A DNA stretch of 63,787 bases, filler included, from Corallochytrium limacisporum Hawaii (lineage: Eukaryota; Protista; Pluriformea), in assembly GCA_002811645.1 (NCBI GenBank). It is 4 parts of 4 records of this genome, joined end to end, with 100 filler letters (N's around TTAATTAATTAA, not from the genome) between each part and the next. Parts side by side here need not be neighbours in the genome. Positions count along the whole stretch, not along the records: positions 45,600 to 62,577 come from PDIP01000182.1; 3 more parts are not named here. One strand, written 5' to 3'. Positions 53,240 through 62,058 of the stretch are shown here, one piece after another. The translations under genes and the position numbers were made by a program. The notes beneath the pieces were generated by a model, which worked only from the letters and a program-made list of their open reading frames with translations, made no database searches and had not been told where the DNA came from. Each line of letters opens with the position of its first letter. Position 1 is the first letter of the stretch.

Positions 53240-53857
53240 ATGTCCTTCAAGCAAGTCATGCTCACCGTTCTTGCGGCTGGTGCGGCTGCCAACCCGCTGC
53301 CTTTCGCTACTGATATTGCACAGCACTTGTTGGATCAGCGTATGGGGGCTATTACTGGCATGGCGGGGGTTCCCTCCGCCTTGTCTGGATTTGGCCCTGA
53401 TACCGGTTTCTACGTTGGGCCTCAGCCAGATTTCGACTGCGGCGACACGATGACTCAAGCTTTGCTGCAGGGCGTAGCATGCATGCTCTACTACCTTGAT
53501 ACCACCGACAACAATCGACTGATGTATGTCCGCGGTAACCCCAAACAACTGGAAGGTAAGATCACGAGTGAGGGTGAGTGGAAGTTTGAGGCGGATAAAC
53601 ACCAGCGTGATCTGCAGTGGTATACCAATGAACCTATGAAAGTAAACGATGCAAACACTTTCCACTTCAGGTTTGGATCCGATGTTAGCTTTTCCGCTAA
53701 GCCTGCTATTGATTACAAGAAAGTCAAGTTCCTTGACAGCATTGGTGCTGAGGATACAGCCCAGGGTCGGATACCCGCCTACTTTTTCGGCCCTGTTCAA
53801 TATGACGAGACGTACGACCTCATGTGCGTCTACGTCGTTGCGCCTGGTTGTGACTAG
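53240..53857 (+). CDS. Secreted 4-Cys orphan-family protein, subgroup B (B3)
   Basis: Signal peptide MSFKQVMLTVLAAGAAANP; FYVGPQP..C...QGVACMLYYLD; FFGP...YDLMCVY..P.CD. Confidence 0.85.
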   Translation: MSFKQVMLTVLAAGAAANPLPFATDIAQHLLDQRMGAITGMAGVPSALSGFGPDTGFYVGPQPDFDCGDTMTQALLQGVACMLYYLDTTDNNRLMYVRGNPKQLEGKITSEGEWKFEADKHQRDLQWYTNEPMKVNDANTFHFRFGSDVSFSAKPAIDYKKVKFLDSIGAEDTAQGRIPAYFFGPVQYDETYDLMCVYVVAPGCD

Positions 53858-54997: not shown

Positions 54998-55774
54998 TTA
55001 GAGGTCCCACTTGGTTGGGTCGGTGGGGTGCAGGCGACGGTCGTTGCACTTGGCATGGCCCTCCTCGGTACCATCACACCAGCCTCCAGCGCAGTCCATG
55101 TCGAGCATGCAGTTTTCACCGTCAGCTTTTCCACTAGAGTTAGGGGCGCAGTAGCTGTTTTGGCAGTTTTGGGACCAGCACATGCTGTCATCGTCGCACG
55201 GGGCGTTAATACGACGGAAACCAAGACCAGTTCCTTCGCACTGGCGACTATCCATGTTGCACCCATGGAAATCACAGCATTCAGCTCCAGTGTTGCATGT
55301 TTCTCCGAGTGCCTGGCAAGTATCGTCATTTACAATAACGGGAGTGGCGCTGGCTATGCCGGCCGGGGTACCGATAGCATACCAGTTGGGCTTGTCGGTT
55401 GGGTGCAGGCGACGGTCGTTGCACTTGGCATGGCCCCCCTCGGTACCATCACACCAGCCTCCAGCGCAGTCCATATCGTACATGCAGTTTTCACCGTCAG
55501 GTTTAGCAGACTCAGGAGGGGCGCAGTAGCTGTTTTGGCAGTTTTGGGACCAGCACATGCTGTCATCGTCGCACGGGGCGTTAATACGACGGAAACCAAG
55601 ACCAGTTCCTTCGCACTGGCGACTATCCATGTTGCACCCATGGAAATCACAGCATTCAGCTCCAGTGCTGCATGTTTGTCCAATTTCCTGGCAAGTTTCG
55701 TCATTTACATTGACGGGGGAGGCACTGGCCATGCCGACGAGGGCGCCTAGAGCAATAGCACTGAAAGTCTTCAT
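54998..55774 (-). CDS. Secreted cysteine-rich precursor with two 125-aa repeats, each a knottin-like module plus two 4-Cys modules (K1; start MKTFSAIA)
   Basis: Signal peptide; 375-bp internal DNA repeat; C-x6-C-x5-CC-x4-C-x6-C followed by RR. Confidence 0.88.
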   Translation of the reverse strand: MKTFSAIALGALVGMASASPVNVNDETCQEIGQTCSTGAECCDFHGCNMDSRQCEGTGLGFRRINAPCDDDSMCWSQNCQNSYCAPPESAKPDGENCMYDMDCAGGWCDGTEGGHAKCNDRRLHPTDKPNWYAIGTPAGIASATPVIVNDDTCQALGETCNTGAECCDFHGCNMDSRQCEGTGLGFRRINAPCDDDSMCWSQNCQNSYCAPNSSGKADGENCMLDMDCAGGWCDGTEEGHAKCNDRRLHPTDPTKWDL

Positions 55775-57486
55775 GTTGAGTACGGATCGGGTTGTTAGAT
55801 CTTTGGAACTTCTTTTCAGAATTGAAAGCAAGATGCTTTGGATATGTGAGGATGGTTGAAAAGGGTCAAACAGTCTGTCATCGGTACGCGCCCTTATTCT
55901 TAAATACCTTTGTTCCAGAGAACCTGACGCTCATCATGTGGTGTCTGTTGCGTGTAGAAACCCCAACTTCTTAAACCCAACATGATCCAGGTTCTCACCT
56001 TCACCGTGTGATTCTTTTTCTCCTGTCCTTTACGATTCCCGTCTCCACGTTCCTCGCCGTGCCTACCCTTTGCATCTTCTAGACTTCCAACCTGAGGCTG
56101 CTTAGGCGTGGGCCAATTGAGATAATGAAAGCACATAGAGGCCCAGGCTGCGTATGGAATATCCGGTCTCGGTTTCAAAGTTGAAGGCAGTGCGGACGAC
56201 TGAAAAGTTGCAAAGGTGACACCAACATGCGCGGGTTAGCAGTCTTACGCATGACATGGAAGGTTGAGGGGGAGAAAGCGCAAGCAGCCTGAAGCTTCAA
56301 CCCAGTCTTCATAATATCACACCAACTCATATGGGCCCAACACGCTGGGTTCAATCTATCCAGAAGTCTCAGACCTGGTAGTATCAGCAATCGATTGATT
56401 ATACATTGGCACTATAGATGGGTGTGTCCGTTTCTTAAGCGATCCGTCCTGGTTCCCACTACCTGGTGACACAACAACCGCTGATGTGGTAGTGGTACGT
56501 CCAAGTTTGGATCAGAGCCTTTGATTCCATGGCTTTGACGTATAGAGGATGAATTGAATGGGGAATTTCCAACTGCCCAAGATGGTATGCTCCAGCCTGT
56601 CGATGCGTATTACTAACTGATGGACCACTGTCCCATTTAATCTCTGCTCGAGACTTGGGTTTGGTAAGGCAAACCAGATTATTTCATGACGTGACATTGC
56701 ACATAGCATTTTCGGCCCTGTTCAATCGACTCCGAGTTCTCTATACAAAATGAAAGGGCATAAAGTTTGGTGGACAGTAAAGGTTCTCCGTCGCATATGG
56801 TGCGGTGATCCCACTCACAAAAACACTGAGAGCCAATCTCTTGGCTACATCAACTTGTGGGACTGTGTTACCGTCATCGATGTGGGCCCACGGGTGTCGC
56901 TTCTTACATGATCAACAGGCACTAGATTTGGCTACAGTCAGAAGCACGAGCAATCACCAAACTGACACTCCTTCCTTTTAACAACTACCACTAGGCCGCC
57001 AATACGTACCAACAGACCAGAAAGGAGTTGACACTGTATTGCTGGGGGTTCCACTGGTTGTGGCACTGGTTGTGGATGGAGAAAGTCTGTTGTCTCTCCT
57101 ACACAACATGTAGAAAGTCAGCCAGCTGATGAATCTCCCCAGCAGTGCTGGACACGGCAAAGGAGTGAGTTGTTACGGATTTCGATGGCTGCGGGTGTCG
57201 CCAGAAACCCCCCTACCCCTCACCCCCCCACCAAATTTAGAGTGGTCAGTCGGCACAACTTGGCGGCTGGGGTACATCGTCCCCCCTTCACGCACATTAA
57301 TATTGGAAATACCGAAGTCCCGTTGGTAAGAGGGCCACCCAACTTTTTCATCGCCCGGACGGGACACACACCACCACCACGTAGGACAGGGGGCATTTTG
57401 CCCAGCAGCAGTCGACCACTGAGAAAAAAATATACGGTACATACCAAGGGTAAAATTCATTTCAGAAGCCGGGGTGTTGCGCGCTT

Positions 57487-57613
57487 TAAAGGGAGTCTAT
57501 TTTATTACCATCTTAGGGGATCACCAGGGGGGGGGTAACGGTTGGGAAAAGTTGAGAAGCGAACCATAAAAGGGAGTCTATTTTAGTACAATATTATGGA
57601 TCACACAGGTGGG
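57487..57613. repeat. Imperfect direct repeat of about 47 bp (2 copies, about 80 bp apart) just 3' of K2
   Basis: taaagggagtctattttattaccatcttaggggatcaccagg vs taaaagggagtctattttagtacaatattatggatcacacagg. Confidence 0.75.
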
Positions 57614-57654
57614 ATGGGGGAAAAATGGGTCGCGGTGTTCGCTCACTTGGGCAT

Positions 57655-58428
57655 CTACCAGTTGGGCTTGTCGGTGGGGTGCAGGCGACGGTCGTTGCAC
57701 TTGGCATGGCCCTCCTCGGTACCATCACACCAGCCTCCAGCACAGTCCATATCGTACGTGCAGTTTTCACCGTCAGCTTTTCCACTAGAGTTAGGGGCGC
57801 AGTAGCTGTTTTGGCAGTTTTGGGACCAGCACATGCTGTCATCGTCGCACGGGGCGTTAATACGACGGAAACCAAGACCAGTTCCTTCGCACTGGCGACT
57901 ATCCATGTTGCACCCATGGAAATCACAGCATTCAGCTCCAGTGCTGCATGTTTGTCCAATTTCCTGGCAAGTTTCGTCATTTACAACAACAGGGGTGGCG
58001 CTGGCCATGCCGACGGGAGTACCAACAGCGATCCACTTAGGGGGGTCGGTGGGGTGCAGGCGACGGTCGTTGCACTTGGCAGGGCCCTCCTCGCTAGCGT
58101 CACACCAGCCTCCAATGCACTCCAAATCGTAAATGCAGGTTTCACCGTCAGGTTTAGCGGAGTCAGGAGGGGCACAGTAGTTGTTTTGGCAATTTGAAGA
58201 GTGGCAATTGTCATCTCCGTCGCACGGAGCGTTAATACGCCTGAGATCAACATCAGTTGATCCAAAGCAGATGCGCAATACCGTGTTGCATCCTTGGAAG
58301 TCACAGCATTCAGATCCAGTGGTGCATGTTTCTCCGAGTTCCTGGCAAGTGTCGTCATTTACATTGACGGGGGAGGCGCTGGCCATGCCGACGAGGGCGC
58401 CAAGAGCAATAGTAAAGAAAGTCTTCAT
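57655..58428 (-). CDS. Secreted cysteine-rich two-repeat precursor (K2; start MKTFFTIA), paralogue of K1
   Basis: Same signal peptide and repeat architecture; second unit nearly identical in DNA to K1 units, first unit diverged. Confidence 0.88.
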   Translation of the reverse strand: MKTFFTIALGALVGMASASPVNVNDDTCQELGETCTTGSECCDFQGCNTVLRICFGSTDVDLRRINAPCDGDDNCHSSNCQNNYCAPPDSAKPDGETCIYDLECIGGWCDASEEGPAKCNDRRLHPTDPPKWIAVGTPVGMASATPVVVNDETCQEIGQTCSTGAECCDFHGCNMDSRQCEGTGLGFRRINAPCDDDSMCWSQNCQNSYCAPNSSGKADGENCTYDMDCAGGWCDGTEEGHAKCNDRRLHPTDKPNW

Positions 58429-60023
58429 GTTGAGCACGGATCGGTGTTTAAGATCTTTTGGAACTTGGTCAGTGTTCGAAAGCAAATTGCTTAAAAGTAG
58501 TTGAGGATAGTTGAGCAGGATCAAAGCTCAGGTCACCGGTCTGCACAGAAGCCTTAAATACCTTTACGTGAGGGAGCCTGACGGCTGGTGTGTGGTATCG
58601 GTTGTCTGCAGAATCGCATGGGAGAGGCCAACCCTTGACGCACCACTTGGTGTAGAAATCTAATCTCACCCTCCTGTCCATGAACAGATCCCAGCAGCCG
58701 TCCCAGTTCCGATCCCTAGGGAGTTCCTATACACTCACCCATTTGACTTTTAGACCACCAGTATCAAATCCTGGTGTTGCCAAGGGATGTAGCATACTCG
58801 TATCAGCACGGTCCACATTTGGACCGGCACATATTTGTGGTAAAGGTTGAGCGATGAATGACAGGTTTGGAGTAGGAGGTGGCGGTACTTATACACACAA
58901 ATGAATGACACACCATCCAGCGCAAAGCGGCGTGAATCCTACCTGTTATCAGAAATTTCTTTATCCTATACTACCAAAGCGCTTCACATGACCCGGCGTA
59001 GGTTGTTAAGTCTTATCTTTTTGACAGCGACATCGAATAACATTCGATCACTCTATCGCCGAATTTTTCATATTCCCGCGTTGGTTGTGCTCACCAGCAT
59101 GCGACCCAACAACAGTGTACGCAAAAGTGCAACATATATCAGAACATTAATACCGTGGAGTTGAAAGAATGCAAGATGGTTCGGGCAGAAGATGTTTAAA
59201 CTGCCCAAATTAGTCCACCTGTGTGTAGGTCCTTGATGCCTCCCGGTGGCACGGTCACCATGCTCACGGCGTCACTACCTCTCCTTGAGTTGGGTTGATA
59301 AGGCACCTCACAACCTCTTATCCGGTGGCGACGATGTACTCACCAGTGATAGCACTGCCAATATCTGCTCTTCTGTAGAGAGTCCGCATCTGTAACACGC
59401 TCGCTCAATAGCGATAATCTTGTTCGCAGCCGAGCGCGCCACATTTTCAAGTGTCCCTCCCTGGCACGCAGGTGTCCGATCCGCATTGATACCCGAGAGT
59501 CCTCGGTTCCTCCTTCTGACCCCCTACAGTGGCGAAGCGAAATGGACTAAACTCACTTGGACCCGAATTGCCTACAGAGCGATGAATATAGTGTATGAGA
59601 TGTGGTAATTAATAATCGGGCTTGACTACGATTTCCCAGATCAGGTATACGAGGCCAAGCCTCATCACTGTGGGTTTTTCAAACCGCTAGGTGGTGAAGG
59701 TACTAGAGCCACCGCACATCTGAGAGTTCAGGGTGTGGGCTCAGGTTGAGACCCCTTGAATGGCAGGGAAACTGCAGAGTGGATGCCAGTGGATGACAGC
59801 TCGAGTCACTCGCTTGAGTCTCCTCACAAGGCAAGGCTACGCACACGCGACTTCTGCGGAATTGGTAACGGTTATTGCTTGCAACAGTCTTAGTTGTGGG
59901 CTAGGCGACGACATCCCCATACATTTTGTTCCCAGTCCCCACTCCCTACCCCGAGCATATTAATTTCATATGGCTTTTCAGTTCCGCGGAGCCACTCACT
60001 GTTGCGAACGGGCAGGCCTGGGG

Positions 60024-60470
60024 NNNNNNNNNNNNNNNNNNNNNNNNNNNNNNNNNNNNNNNNNNNNNNNNNNNNNNNNNNNNNNNNNNNNNNNNNNNNN
60101 NNNNNNNNNNNNNNNNNNNNNNNNNNNNNNNNNNNNNNNNNNNNNNNNNNNNNNNNNNNNNNNNNNNNNNNNNNNNNNNNNNNNNNNNNNNNNNNNNNNN
60201 NNNNNNNNNNNNNNNNNNNNNNNNNNNNNNNNNNNNNNNNNNNNNNNNNNNNNNNNNNNNNNNNNNNNNNNNNNNNNNNNNNNNNNNNNNNNNNNNNNNN
60301 NNNNNNNNNNNNNNNNNNNNNNNNNNNNNNNNNNNNNNNNNNNNNNNNNNNNNNNNNNNNNNNNNNNNNNNNNNNNNNNNNNNNNNNNNNNNNNNNNNNN
60401 NNNNNNNNNNNNNNNNNNNNNNNNNNNNNNNNNNNNNNNNNNNNNNNNNNNNNNNNNNNNNNNNNNNNNN
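60024..60470. other. Sized assembly gap
   Basis: Run of N without the TTAATTAATTAA linker. Confidence 0.95.
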
Positions 60471-60658
60471 GGGAGGGTGGGGCGGCATACAATTTGTTGC
60501 GGTATGGGAAACGCGGGGCTAGGTCGCTTTCCTCGGGACTCCCGCCGGGAAGAGGAAGATGTGCACACCATCGGTCCGGTGGACACCAATGGTCATGGTA
60601 CGAACCAAAGTCACTATGAATATTCCTGGTTGTAATCCCATATGCCGGGATTTATTGT

Positions 60659-61413: not shown

Positions 61414-62058
61414 TTAGCACTTAGGTTCGGTAAACGCTCCCCACCACAGGTGCACGTCATCTTCCAGTGTACCAATGGTGGGACTGCGGTACCAGTAGAA
61501 GATGAGGTTATCAGCATAAAAGAGGCCATTCATACCAAACAGAGGCTCGGTCCAAGTGTTCGTCACCGCAATGGCTGGGTCAGCATCTTCCAGTCCAATT
61601 TCGTAAGAGAACGTTTCGGTTCCGTTGACCTCCAGCGTCCCGAGACCCCATTGCCACATGTTGGGCAAGTTGGCCTTCTTGTAATTTAGCGTTCTTGTTT
61701 GCTCTCCAAAGTTGAGGGTGCCACCGAGTGTAATGTCGTCGTGAACAATGACGACCTCCTTGTTCTCGCCCTCGAGTTTGAAGGGAACACAACTGAGTTT
61801 AATAGATTTAGCAACTCTTGGGGCGGTGCAATCTCCATTGTTAAAGTGATCTGGACGAATGTAAAAGCCGAGTTTTTTGTAATCATCGCCATCGCCTTCG
61901 ATGAACTCCTGGCGAGCAGCCTCACTGGGGAACATGGCAGGGTCGGAGGCAATAGCCTGGCGGATTACTTCCGGCAGGTTTGCAGGATTAGGAGCGGTGG
62001 AAGAACCAGCAGAGGCGACAGCCACGCCAGCAGCAAGAGCAACAACCTTGAAATTCAT
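61414..62058 (-). CDS. Secreted orphan-family protein, subgroup A (A3; third Cys replaced by Trp)
   Basis: Signal peptide MNFKVVALAAGVAVASAG, FPSEAARQEF, YWYR...LWWGAFTEPKC. Confidence 0.85.
   Translation of the reverse strand: MNFKVVALAAGVAVASAGSSTAPNPANLPEVIRQAIASDPAMFPSEAARQEFIEGDGDDYKKLGFYIRPDHFNNGDCTAPRVAKSIKLSCVPFKLEGENKEVVIVHDDITLGGTLNFGEQTRTLNYKKANLPNMWQWGLGTLEVNGTETFSYEIGLEDADPAIAVTNTWTEPLFGMNGLFYADNLIFYWYRSPTIGTLEDDVHLWWGAFTEPKC

Follow-up and report, generated by a model that had tools for sequence, protein, structure and literature searches.

Secreted proteins composed of tandem repeats of disulfide-rich domains have been described as SCREPs, examples of which are the spider double-knot toxins DkTx and Hi1a (PMC6262176). 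Another type of repetitive secreted protein, the fungal KEPs, combines a signal peptide with internal repeats and RR at the module borders (PMC6339444, PMC7329392). By their published definition, KEPs carry a signal peptide and have three or more repeats with KR, RR or KK sites between them; RR is one of the motifs that Kex2 accepts in fungal precursors (PMC6339444). The inhibitor-cystine-knot (ICK) toxins, such as SGTx1, hanatoxin and the framework VI/VII toxin GXIA, share the cysteine order C-C-CC-C-C and are basic or amphipathic. Convertases of the kexin/furin type are widespread in opisthokonts, and an aliphatic residue directly after the site is unfavourable for them. The cationic vertebrate peptide LEAP-2 has such a furin site upstream of an R-x-I-x-A-x-C stretch. 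Here we analysed two neighbouring genes, K1 and K2, in a window of 63,787 nucleotides (the whole stretch of DNA that was analysed, four parts joined end to end) from the assembly GCA_002811645.1 of Corallochytrium limacisporum Hawaii.

ORF search and translation revealed that K1 and K2 are intronless minus-strand ORFs, each encoding a putative signal peptide followed by two 125-aa units, with a unit period of 375 nt (Table 1). The start codon chosen for K1 is the ATG matching the MKTF start of its paralogues, whereas the public K1 model is partial and ends at residue 218 (218 aa). At both N-termini, the signal-peptide-like stretch ends in ASA followed by SP; this N-terminus is conserved in all paralogues, in line with the secreted-type proteins assumed in the preliminary description. 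Within each unit, a pattern search found, exactly and in all four cases, the order C-x6-C-x5-CC-x4-C-x6-C, RR, C-x5-C-x4-C-x4-C, C-x5-C-x4-C-x9-C and RR, with the six-Cys pattern at residues 28–54 and 153–179 of K1 and residues 28–54 and 154–180 of K2. A unit thus holds 14 Cys, and all 28 Cys per protein are kept in both K1 and K2. In DNA, identity is 92%–96% for three of the units and 64% for the fourth one, K2 unit 1. The cysteine pattern and the RR pairs (eight of eight present) therefore extend to the diverged unit, as had been described before.

The locus is present in two DNA sequencing runs, in which the read depth over the near-identical units is about 3x, as predicted from the assembled copy number; the repeat is thus no assembly artefact. 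Short-read contigs are broken within the repeats. Two other runs under the same species label, which we guessed to be RNA, do not contain the locus, a result uninformative on expression. The piece carrying K1 and K2 contains no further family copy, tRNA or Rfam family, and a Pfam search of K1, K2, their paralogues and the neighbour genes gave nothing above threshold. K1 and K2 sit inside a cluster of other lineage-only secreted-protein genes.

Table 1. Positions of K1, K2 and their parts, counted along the window
Feature	Position	Strand	Basis
K1 gene, 258-aa secreted-type protein + stop codon	54998..55774	-	ORF, translation; matches P0001
K1 putative signal peptide, residues 1-18, ASA end before SP	55721..55774	-	Read from sequence; N-terminus common to all paralogues
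K1 unit 1, residues 19-131: knottin 55613-55693; 4-Cys 55523-55573, 55421-55486; DKPNW tail	55382..55720	-	Pattern search, unit alignment
K1 inter-unit linker, residues 132-143, signal-peptide coding remnant	55346..55381	-	DNA alignment; K2 counterpart disordered in model
K1 unit 2, residues 144-258: knottin 55238-55318; 4-Cys 55148-55198, 55046-55111	55001..55345	-	Pattern search
K2 gene, 257-aa secreted-type protein + stop codon	57655..58428	-	ORF; identical to P0002 (EukProt)
K2 unit 1 (diverged), residues 19-132: knottin 58267-58347; 4-Cys 58174-58224, 58072-58137	58033..58374	-	Pattern search, unit comparison
K2 linker between units, residues 133-144, remnant of signal-peptide DNA, disordered in model	57997..58032	-	Model, DNA alignment
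K2 unit 2 (modelled sequence), residues 145-257: knottin 57889-57969; 4-Cys 57799-57849, 57697-57762	57658..57996	-	Pattern search, unit alignment
First-type RR, between knottin and 4-Cys module (K1 R62-R63)	55586..55591; also 55211-55216, 58237-58242, 57862-57867	-	Pattern search
Second-type RR, after last Cys (K1 R121-R122)	55409..55414; also 55034-55039, 58060-58065, 57685-57690	-	Pattern search

AlphaFold predicted a compact structure for one unit (pLDDT 89, pTM 0.79), with a pLDDT of about 93 for its C-terminal tail. The disorder in the full-length K2 model is confined to the signal peptide (residues 1–20, pLDDT below 50) and the linker (residues 134–150). Superimposing the predicted six-Cys module (residues 12–45) on SGTx1 yielded an rmsd of 1.3 Å over 33 of 34 residues (Z 2.4), and on GXIA an rmsd of 2.0 Å over 32 aa; around Cys V and VI, strands 31–33 and 38–40 form a predicted beta-hairpin. 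Given that the loop lengths of this module also lie within the ICK range in all four units, the knottin proposed in the preliminary description gains support from a confident model in which the module appears ICK-like. The following segments of the model resemble toxins as well: residues 45–74 fit nemertide alpha-1 with an rmsd of 1.6 Å over 30 aa, and residues 71–104 fit Sth1a with an rmsd of 1.4 Å over 29 aa. Moreover, the DSSP pattern repeats three times in the unit, and aligning the module profiles brings their Cys into register. The model suggests that a unit consists of one full knottin, two four-Cys knottin-like modules and a conserved DPxKW tail. The top rows of a Foldseek search are ICK toxins (TM by target 0.71–0.77, E above 0.7), and structural rows were also obtained for LEAP-2, Dkk4-N, draxin and colipase; Z scores stay at or below 2.9 and Foldseek E values above 0.7 because the modules are tiny. 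Z did not exceed 2.6 when the PDB representatives were searched exhaustively with VIA, and a search of the structural atlas gave TM below 0.5.

The architecture of K1 and K2, with a putative signal peptide and two 14-Cys units of three knottin-like modules each, corresponds to that of the SCREPs. Like DkTx and Hi1a, the two proteins combine a putative signal peptide, tandem disulfide-rich domains that would fold independently, and ICK-type modules with short or flexible linkers between them, and they would likewise act uncleaved. They differ from the spider toxins in lacking detectable sequence homology (the family profile matches DkTx weakly, E 0.56), in a repeat that is a three-module unit with a tail rather than a single knottin, and in being very acidic; furthermore, Corallochytrium has no venom apparatus. 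The likeness to single ICK toxins comprises the C-C-CC-C-C order, the predicted hairpin at Cys V/VI and the fit of 1.3–2.0 Å over 32–34 residues. In contrast to these toxins, the module of K1/K2, whose knot is putative, lies inside a larger folded, acidic domain, and no superfamily-type signal or propeptide precedes it. Toxin families of Pfam matched at sub-threshold level only (Toxin_29, E 0.056; Conotoxin_I2, E 5.1). The middle module shares the C-x5-C-x4-C-x4-C spacing and a similar preceding R-x-I-x-A-x-C stretch with LEAP-2 (PF07359). In Pfam, LEAP-2 was matched by six of the 14 units (lowest E 0.004; 13.6 bits, under the cut-off of 27) and Dickkopf_N (PF04706) with E 0.06–0.71 (14.1 bits, under the cut-off of 25); a PDB profile search matched the LEAP-2 structure 2l1q with E 0.04. 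The resemblance to LEAP-2 and Dickkopf-N may represent convergence on a minimal two-disulfide hairpin.

An exhaustive phmmer search among 1.8 billion representatives identified as relatives only about ten Clim_evm proteins (P0003–P0010 and P0012) and no animal protein. These relatives are gene models of the holozoan Corallochytrium limacisporum, which upholds the protist origin stated earlier. A word-indexed protein search with K1 returned nothing beyond the two proteins of K1 and K2 themselves; the same type of search with a unit profile returned only P0001, which is K1 itself, and the known paralogue P0010. The language-model atlas gave one match at 0.78, which is noise level. P0011 (E 3e-4) was rejected as a family member, since it is a repeat protein of low complexity in which Cys is nearly absent. 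Our literature search found no paper joining Corallochytrium with knottins, convertases, neuropeptides or secreted cysteine-rich proteins. Judging from these sequence searches, the family is new and restricted to one species, most likely C. limacisporum.

Sequence comparison among paralogues of 36%–51% identity revealed Cys columns with little or no variation. Also conserved are the aromatic positions GGWC, C-x-[YFW]-D and a terminal W, as well as the C-terminal DPxKW tail, which lies beyond the second RR site. One Cys is missing in three paralogous modules (both units of P0006 and that of P0009), while the number of Cys in P0008 is odd; thus the knot is not strictly kept across the family. 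Seven of the eight close paralogues contain a single unit, so that the family as a whole does not have the design of a multi-peptide precursor. The modules are also found, without dibasic boundaries, at the C-termini of the large secreted proteins P0012 and P0016, the N-terminal domain of which occurs without the modules in P0013 and P0014. Using the N-terminal domain of P0012 as a query retrieved only four more Clim proteins; as these have neither names nor Pfam domains, the fusion partner of P0012 gives no functional clue.

On balance, we consider it probable that K1 and K2 arose by recent duplication within this species-restricted family of secreted disulfide-rich proteins, which act intact as bivalent, SCREP-like extracellular binders. 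The functional unit would be one compact domain of about 113 aa made of three consecutive knottin-type mini-modules. Module 1 would be a full six-Cys, inhibitor-cystine-knot-like module; modules 2 and 3, with four Cys each, would have the same shape minus the extra disulfide, similar to a disulfide-directed hairpin and with a faint resemblance to LEAP-2 and Dickkopf-N. The conserved D-R...DPxKW tail at the C-terminus would pack onto the domain. We infer that the proteins are secreted, stay uncleaved and bind bivalently, with fast-evolving loops displayed on a rigid disulfide scaffold; candidate targets are macromolecules that belong either to other microbes or to the surface of the cell itself.

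The DNA alignment showed that the inter-unit linker is homologous to signal-peptide coding DNA from about codon 7. On this sequence evidence, the two-unit state goes back to a recent duplication inside the gene, which took in most of the region coding for the signal peptide. Starting from an ancestral gene with one unit, an internal 375-nt duplication would have copied nearly the whole coding region and produced the second unit in K1 and K2. The signal-peptide remnant would then have degenerated into a flexible linker, and gene conversion would later have homogenised three of the four units. The dN/dS values are 0.48–0.76, below 1 in all comparisons including those with the diverged unit, and the shared segments are mosaic.

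The RR pairs had originally been taken as the marks of a multi-peptide precursor. On this reading, a kexin/furin-like protease of the secretory pathway would cut after each RR, so that every unit yields two separate peptides with a toxin-, hormone- or antimicrobial-like role, namely a knottin (about 43 aa) and a peptide with eight Cys (57 aa). We regard this alternative as unlikely. A signal peptide, repeated units and RR at both module borders in four of four units do fit such a precursor, as they fit the fungal KEPs. Shuffling produced two RR pairs from the five Arg of one unit in 0.9% of cases (P about 0.009), and two dibasic pairs irrespective of type in 8%; given that the four units are recent duplicates, the RR pattern counts as a single observation and not as four. 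Across the family, the first site, separated from the knottin by a spacer that varies in length and sequence, is dibasic (RR or KKR) in 9 of 11 lineages. This exceeds the need of a purely structural Arg pair, so cleavage at the first RR is conceivable, albeit with low probability. Against it, the second Arg of this site is invariant and persists in the non-dibasic exceptions RVR (P0010) and LR (P0012), and only aliphatic residues (I, M, V or L) directly follow the two sites. In the wider family, RR is not conserved at the second site, which is dibasic only in K1 and K2; the other members have DRT, DRS, DRA and the like, with D-R alone conserved, and the ordered DPxKW tail continues past this point.

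The predicted structures also argue against processing. Both RR sites are located in ordered blocks (for the unit model, pLDDT 91 and 94; for full-length K2, 86 and at least 70), whereas the inter-unit linker, the flexible segment of the model, is without a basic pair. No dibasic site separates the tandem knottin modules of P0003, P0009, P0010, P0012 and P0016. K1 and K2 thus depart from the fungal KEPs in several respects: the units number two, and mostly one in the paralogues, rather than at least three (PMC6339444); one of the two site types is unconserved; the sites belong to a folded domain instead of flexible spacers; and the units are large disulfide-rich domains, not short linear peptides. 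Both putative products would be strongly acidic, as is the Asp-rich mature K1 with 39 Asp/Glu versus 16 Lys/Arg, a composition that led us to reject a cationic antimicrobial peptide and runs counter to the venom-like role suggested in the preliminary description, given the charge of most channel toxins and cationic antimicrobial peptides. The more specific version, in which a kexin/furin-type convertase cuts at the conserved RR before I/M-N-x-x-C and one precursor yields, in the manner of animal venoms or hormones, both the ICK knottin and an 8-Cys peptide resembling LEAP-2/Dickkopf-N, seems more doubtful still.

Alternatively, the modules may serve in anchoring or structure, either as parts of the wall or extracellular matrix or as a stand-alone substrate-binding module that tethers larger secreted proteins, like small disulfide-rich carbohydrate-binding modules or EB/Dickkopf-type matrix repeats. 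The C-terminal position of the modules in P0012 and P0016, whose N-terminal domain also stands without them, is compatible with this role, as are the conserved aromatics, the acidic, Asp-rich composition and the sub-threshold matches to the EB module and Dickkopf_N. However, when a match to a structural wall or repeat family was looked for, no significant carbohydrate-binding or matrix family was found, and the proteins are devoid of long repeat arrays, Ser/Thr-rich stalks and anchor signals. In addition, dN/dS of 0.5–0.76 and the restriction to one lineage better suit an interaction or defence role, and we consider a structural function improbable as well. It is highly improbable that the ORFs are decaying duplicates or annotation artefacts of a repeat-rich region rather than expressed functional genes: the lack of a match in the two presumed RNA runs, the truncated public K1 model and the contig breaks would agree with this, but both ORFs are intact with every Cys kept, dN/dS is below 1 throughout, paralogues are conserved across the genome and read depth equals the assembled copy number.

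In summary, animal venoms, plants and fungi are the main known sources of knottins and of tandem disulfide-rich proteins, and here a whole family is found in a unicellular holozoan. Each unit combines a six-Cys module with two four-Cys ones that share its predicted shape, so that it lends itself naturally to the debated question of how the ICK relates to the simpler two-disulfide hairpin. If cleavage at RR is true, the full and reduced modules side by side would record an interconversion of knot and hairpin before animals arose; if the first RR is processed, convertase-made disulfide-rich secreted peptides would predate the origin of animals. If the first RR is not processed, the family would still represent a compact, very stable bivalent scaffold. 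In Corallochytrium limacisporum, the family also marks a rapidly evolving cluster of genes for secreted proteins.

The neighbouring genes K1 and K2, spaced 1.9 kb apart, share the same hydrophobic N-terminus that ends in ASA, is followed by SP, is conserved in every paralogue and is read as a putative signal peptide. Behind it, each protein carries two units with a period of 375 nt. Every unit follows the order C-x6-C-x5-CC-x4-C-x6-C, short spacer, RR, C-x5-C-x4-C-x4-C, C-x5-C-x4-C-x9-C, N-D-R-R and a W-terminated tail, confirming exactly the cysteine and RR pattern of the preliminary description. Three units are 92%–96% identical in DNA, and unit 1 of K2 stands at 64%. Read depth across the near-identical units was about 3× in two DNA runs, as expected for three copies; thus, the repeat is no assembly artefact. 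Given that P0001, the public K1 gene model, stops at residue 218 of the 258-aa ORF and that short-read contigs are broken within the repeated units, annotation of the K1 locus is probably incomplete. Two sequencing runs guessed to be RNA contain none of the K1/K2 locus, which has no bearing on expression. Mature K1 contains 39 Asp/Glu versus 16 Lys/Arg, with 8 of its 10 Arg within RR pairs; its products, if any, would be strongly acidic, in contrast to cationic antimicrobial peptides and most channel toxins. The second units bear an N-S-S sequon (A-P-N-S-S; window 55130–55138 in K1 and 57781–57789 in K2), a possible N-glycosylation site; P-E-S or P-D-S occupies this position in the first units.

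Coordinates of K1, K2 and the adjoining secreted-type genes in the window
Feature	Position	Strand	Remarks
K1 ORF	54998-55774	-	258 aa counted from ATG, intronless
K2 ORF	57655-58428	-	257 aa, intronless
First neighbour family copy	48470-49126	-	~215-aa secreted-type, start MNFK..., end ...AEPKC
First neighbour family copy	51895-52560	-	~215-aa secreted-type, start MNFK..., end ...AEPKC
First neighbour family copy	61414-62058	-	~215-aa secreted-type, start MNFK..., end ...AEPKC
First neighbour family, distant copy	46056-46772	-	22% identical
Second neighbour family copy	51031-51672	+	secreted-type, start MSFK..., end ...P-x-C-D
Second neighbour family copy	53240-53857	+	secreted-type, start MSFK..., end ...P-x-C-D

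AlphaFold2 prediction of one unit with a 14-unit alignment yielded a compact, confident model (pLDDT 89, pTM 0.79), the secondary-structure string of which shows one local pattern three times over. Searching the PDB with this model via Foldseek returned almost entirely ICK toxins of spiders and cone snails, plus LEAP-2, draxin, Dkk4-N and colipase; the best ICK-toxin rows gave TM-scores by target of 0.71–0.77 and rmsd of 1.2–1.7 Å, with E above 0.7 owing to the very small size of the modules. Upon re-alignment, all three modules fitted ICK peptides: residues 12–45 on SGTx1 (1.3 Å, 33 of 34 residues, 33% identity), 45–74 on nemertide alpha-1 (1.6 Å, 30 residues) and 71–104 on Sth1a (1.4 Å, 29 residues). 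Profile-profile alignment also placed the Cys of the three modules in register, though weakly (P 0.005–0.09). In our reading of the model, the unit would consist of one full knottin, two knottin-like modules without the third disulfide, and an ordered tail; as far as models go, the earlier proposal of knottin modules is supported. For the middle module, spacing and flanking residues are similar to those of LEAP-2 (PDB profile E 0.04). The Pfam family LEAP-2 matched 6 of the 14 units (best E 0.004), Dickkopf_N three and the EB module five; since every score lies below the curated cut-off, these are resemblances rather than memberships.

Among 5.8 billion proteins, a word-indexed search retrieved nothing beyond K1 and K2 themselves. 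Exhaustive phmmer scanning of 1.84 billion representatives revealed eight clear relatives (P0003–P0010, E 1e-10 to 2e-32) and also P0012, all EukProt Clim_evm entries, that is, gene models of the unicellular holozoan Corallochytrium limacisporum; none was found outside this species in that scan. Seven of the eight close paralogues (136–175 aa) have the same signal peptide followed by just one unit, and P0006 has two; P0003, P0009 and P0010 have an extra knottin module on the N-terminal side. The large secreted proteins P0012 and P0016 carry a Corallochytrium-only N-terminal domain and, at the C-terminus, knottin and 4-Cys modules in tandem. These modules are missing from their relatives P0013 and P0014, and thus behave as shuffled domains. 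The N-terminal domain shared by the large proteins spans about 450 aa without a Pfam match, and P0015 and P0016 have another C-terminal region in common. The family alignment is invariant at the Cys columns, at one of the two Arg in the first RR, at one Gly and at the Asp of C-x-x-D-x-x-C; the terminal Trp and the D-R following the last Cys are nearly invariant. Some paralogous modules (in P0006, where both units are affected, and in P0008 and P0009) lack one framework Cys, and the resulting odd Cys counts could reflect gene-model errors, free thiols or intermolecular disulfides.

The preliminary description further took K1 and K2 for multi-peptide precursors cut at RR. Cleavage at the first RR, in front of a mature domain, would suit the knottin-to-site spacer, which varies in length and sequence among family members, but appears unlikely. 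The site reads RR in eight lineages, KKR in one, RVR in P0010 and LR in P0012; its second Arg is invariant in 14 of 14 alignment rows and is retained even in the absence of a dibasic motif. The residues after it, I/M/V and then N, are nearly invariant. Both models show the site as ordered (block pLDDT 91 and 86), and in the superposition it falls within module 2's N-terminal arm. Disorder in the full-length K2 model is confined to the signal peptide (1–20) and the inter-unit linker (134–150), and this linker has no basic pair. For the second site, cleavage is not supported. It is N-D-R-R-L-H-P in K1 and K2, but all other members either have T, S or A after D-R or lack the R altogether, leaving only the first Arg conserved; the dibasic state is therefore a peculiarity of one recent lineage. 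The conserved DPxKW tail beyond it is placed with pLDDT ~93, and a cut here would, according to the model, remove a conserved part of the domain. Two RR pairs within one unit are unlikely by shuffling (P ~0.009), although the four units count as one evolutionary observation. A multi-unit precursor design is likewise unsupported, given the prevalence of single-unit paralogues (7 of 8) and the family's tandem knottins, whose junctions lack basic residues; fungal KEX2-processed repeat proteins are operationally defined by at least three repeats, versus two units in K1 and K2 (PMC6339444).

The inter-unit linker is YAIGTPAGIASA in K1 and IAVGTPVGMASA in K2. Its DNA can be aligned to the stretch that encodes the signal peptide, beginning near codon 7, and thus the 375-nt duplication copied nearly the whole single-unit coding region; the former hydrophobic core has since been interrupted by Thr-Pro. 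Segment sharing is mosaic, some segments being common to the first units and others to the second units, with a central block identical in three of the four, a pattern suggesting that a gene already containing two units was duplicated and that gene conversion followed. With dN/dS of 0.48–0.76, the units are constrained yet fast-evolving, like many secreted interaction proteins.

The 17 kb around K1 and K2 contain two further families of small secreted proteins, neither with a Pfam match and partly in divergent pairs; the region is thus a cluster of lineage-specific secreted-protein genes. The MNFK...AEPKC family has three to four copies there, 39%–41% identical apart from the distant one, and the two MSFK...P-x-C-D copies (~205–213 aa) are 43% identical. 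Each of the latter lies head-to-head with an MNFK copy, suggesting divergently transcribed pairs within the cluster. ORFs listed across the N run at window ~60020–60480, an assembly gap, are artefacts.

Our literature search turned up no publication on proteins of this kind in Corallochytrium; the architecture of K1 and K2 fits that of secreted cysteine-rich repeat proteins (SCREP; PMC6262176). In summary, the best-supported reading of the sequences and models is that K1 and K2 represent a new family, restricted to this species, of secreted disulfide-rich proteins with several domains that remain intact and putatively act as binders.
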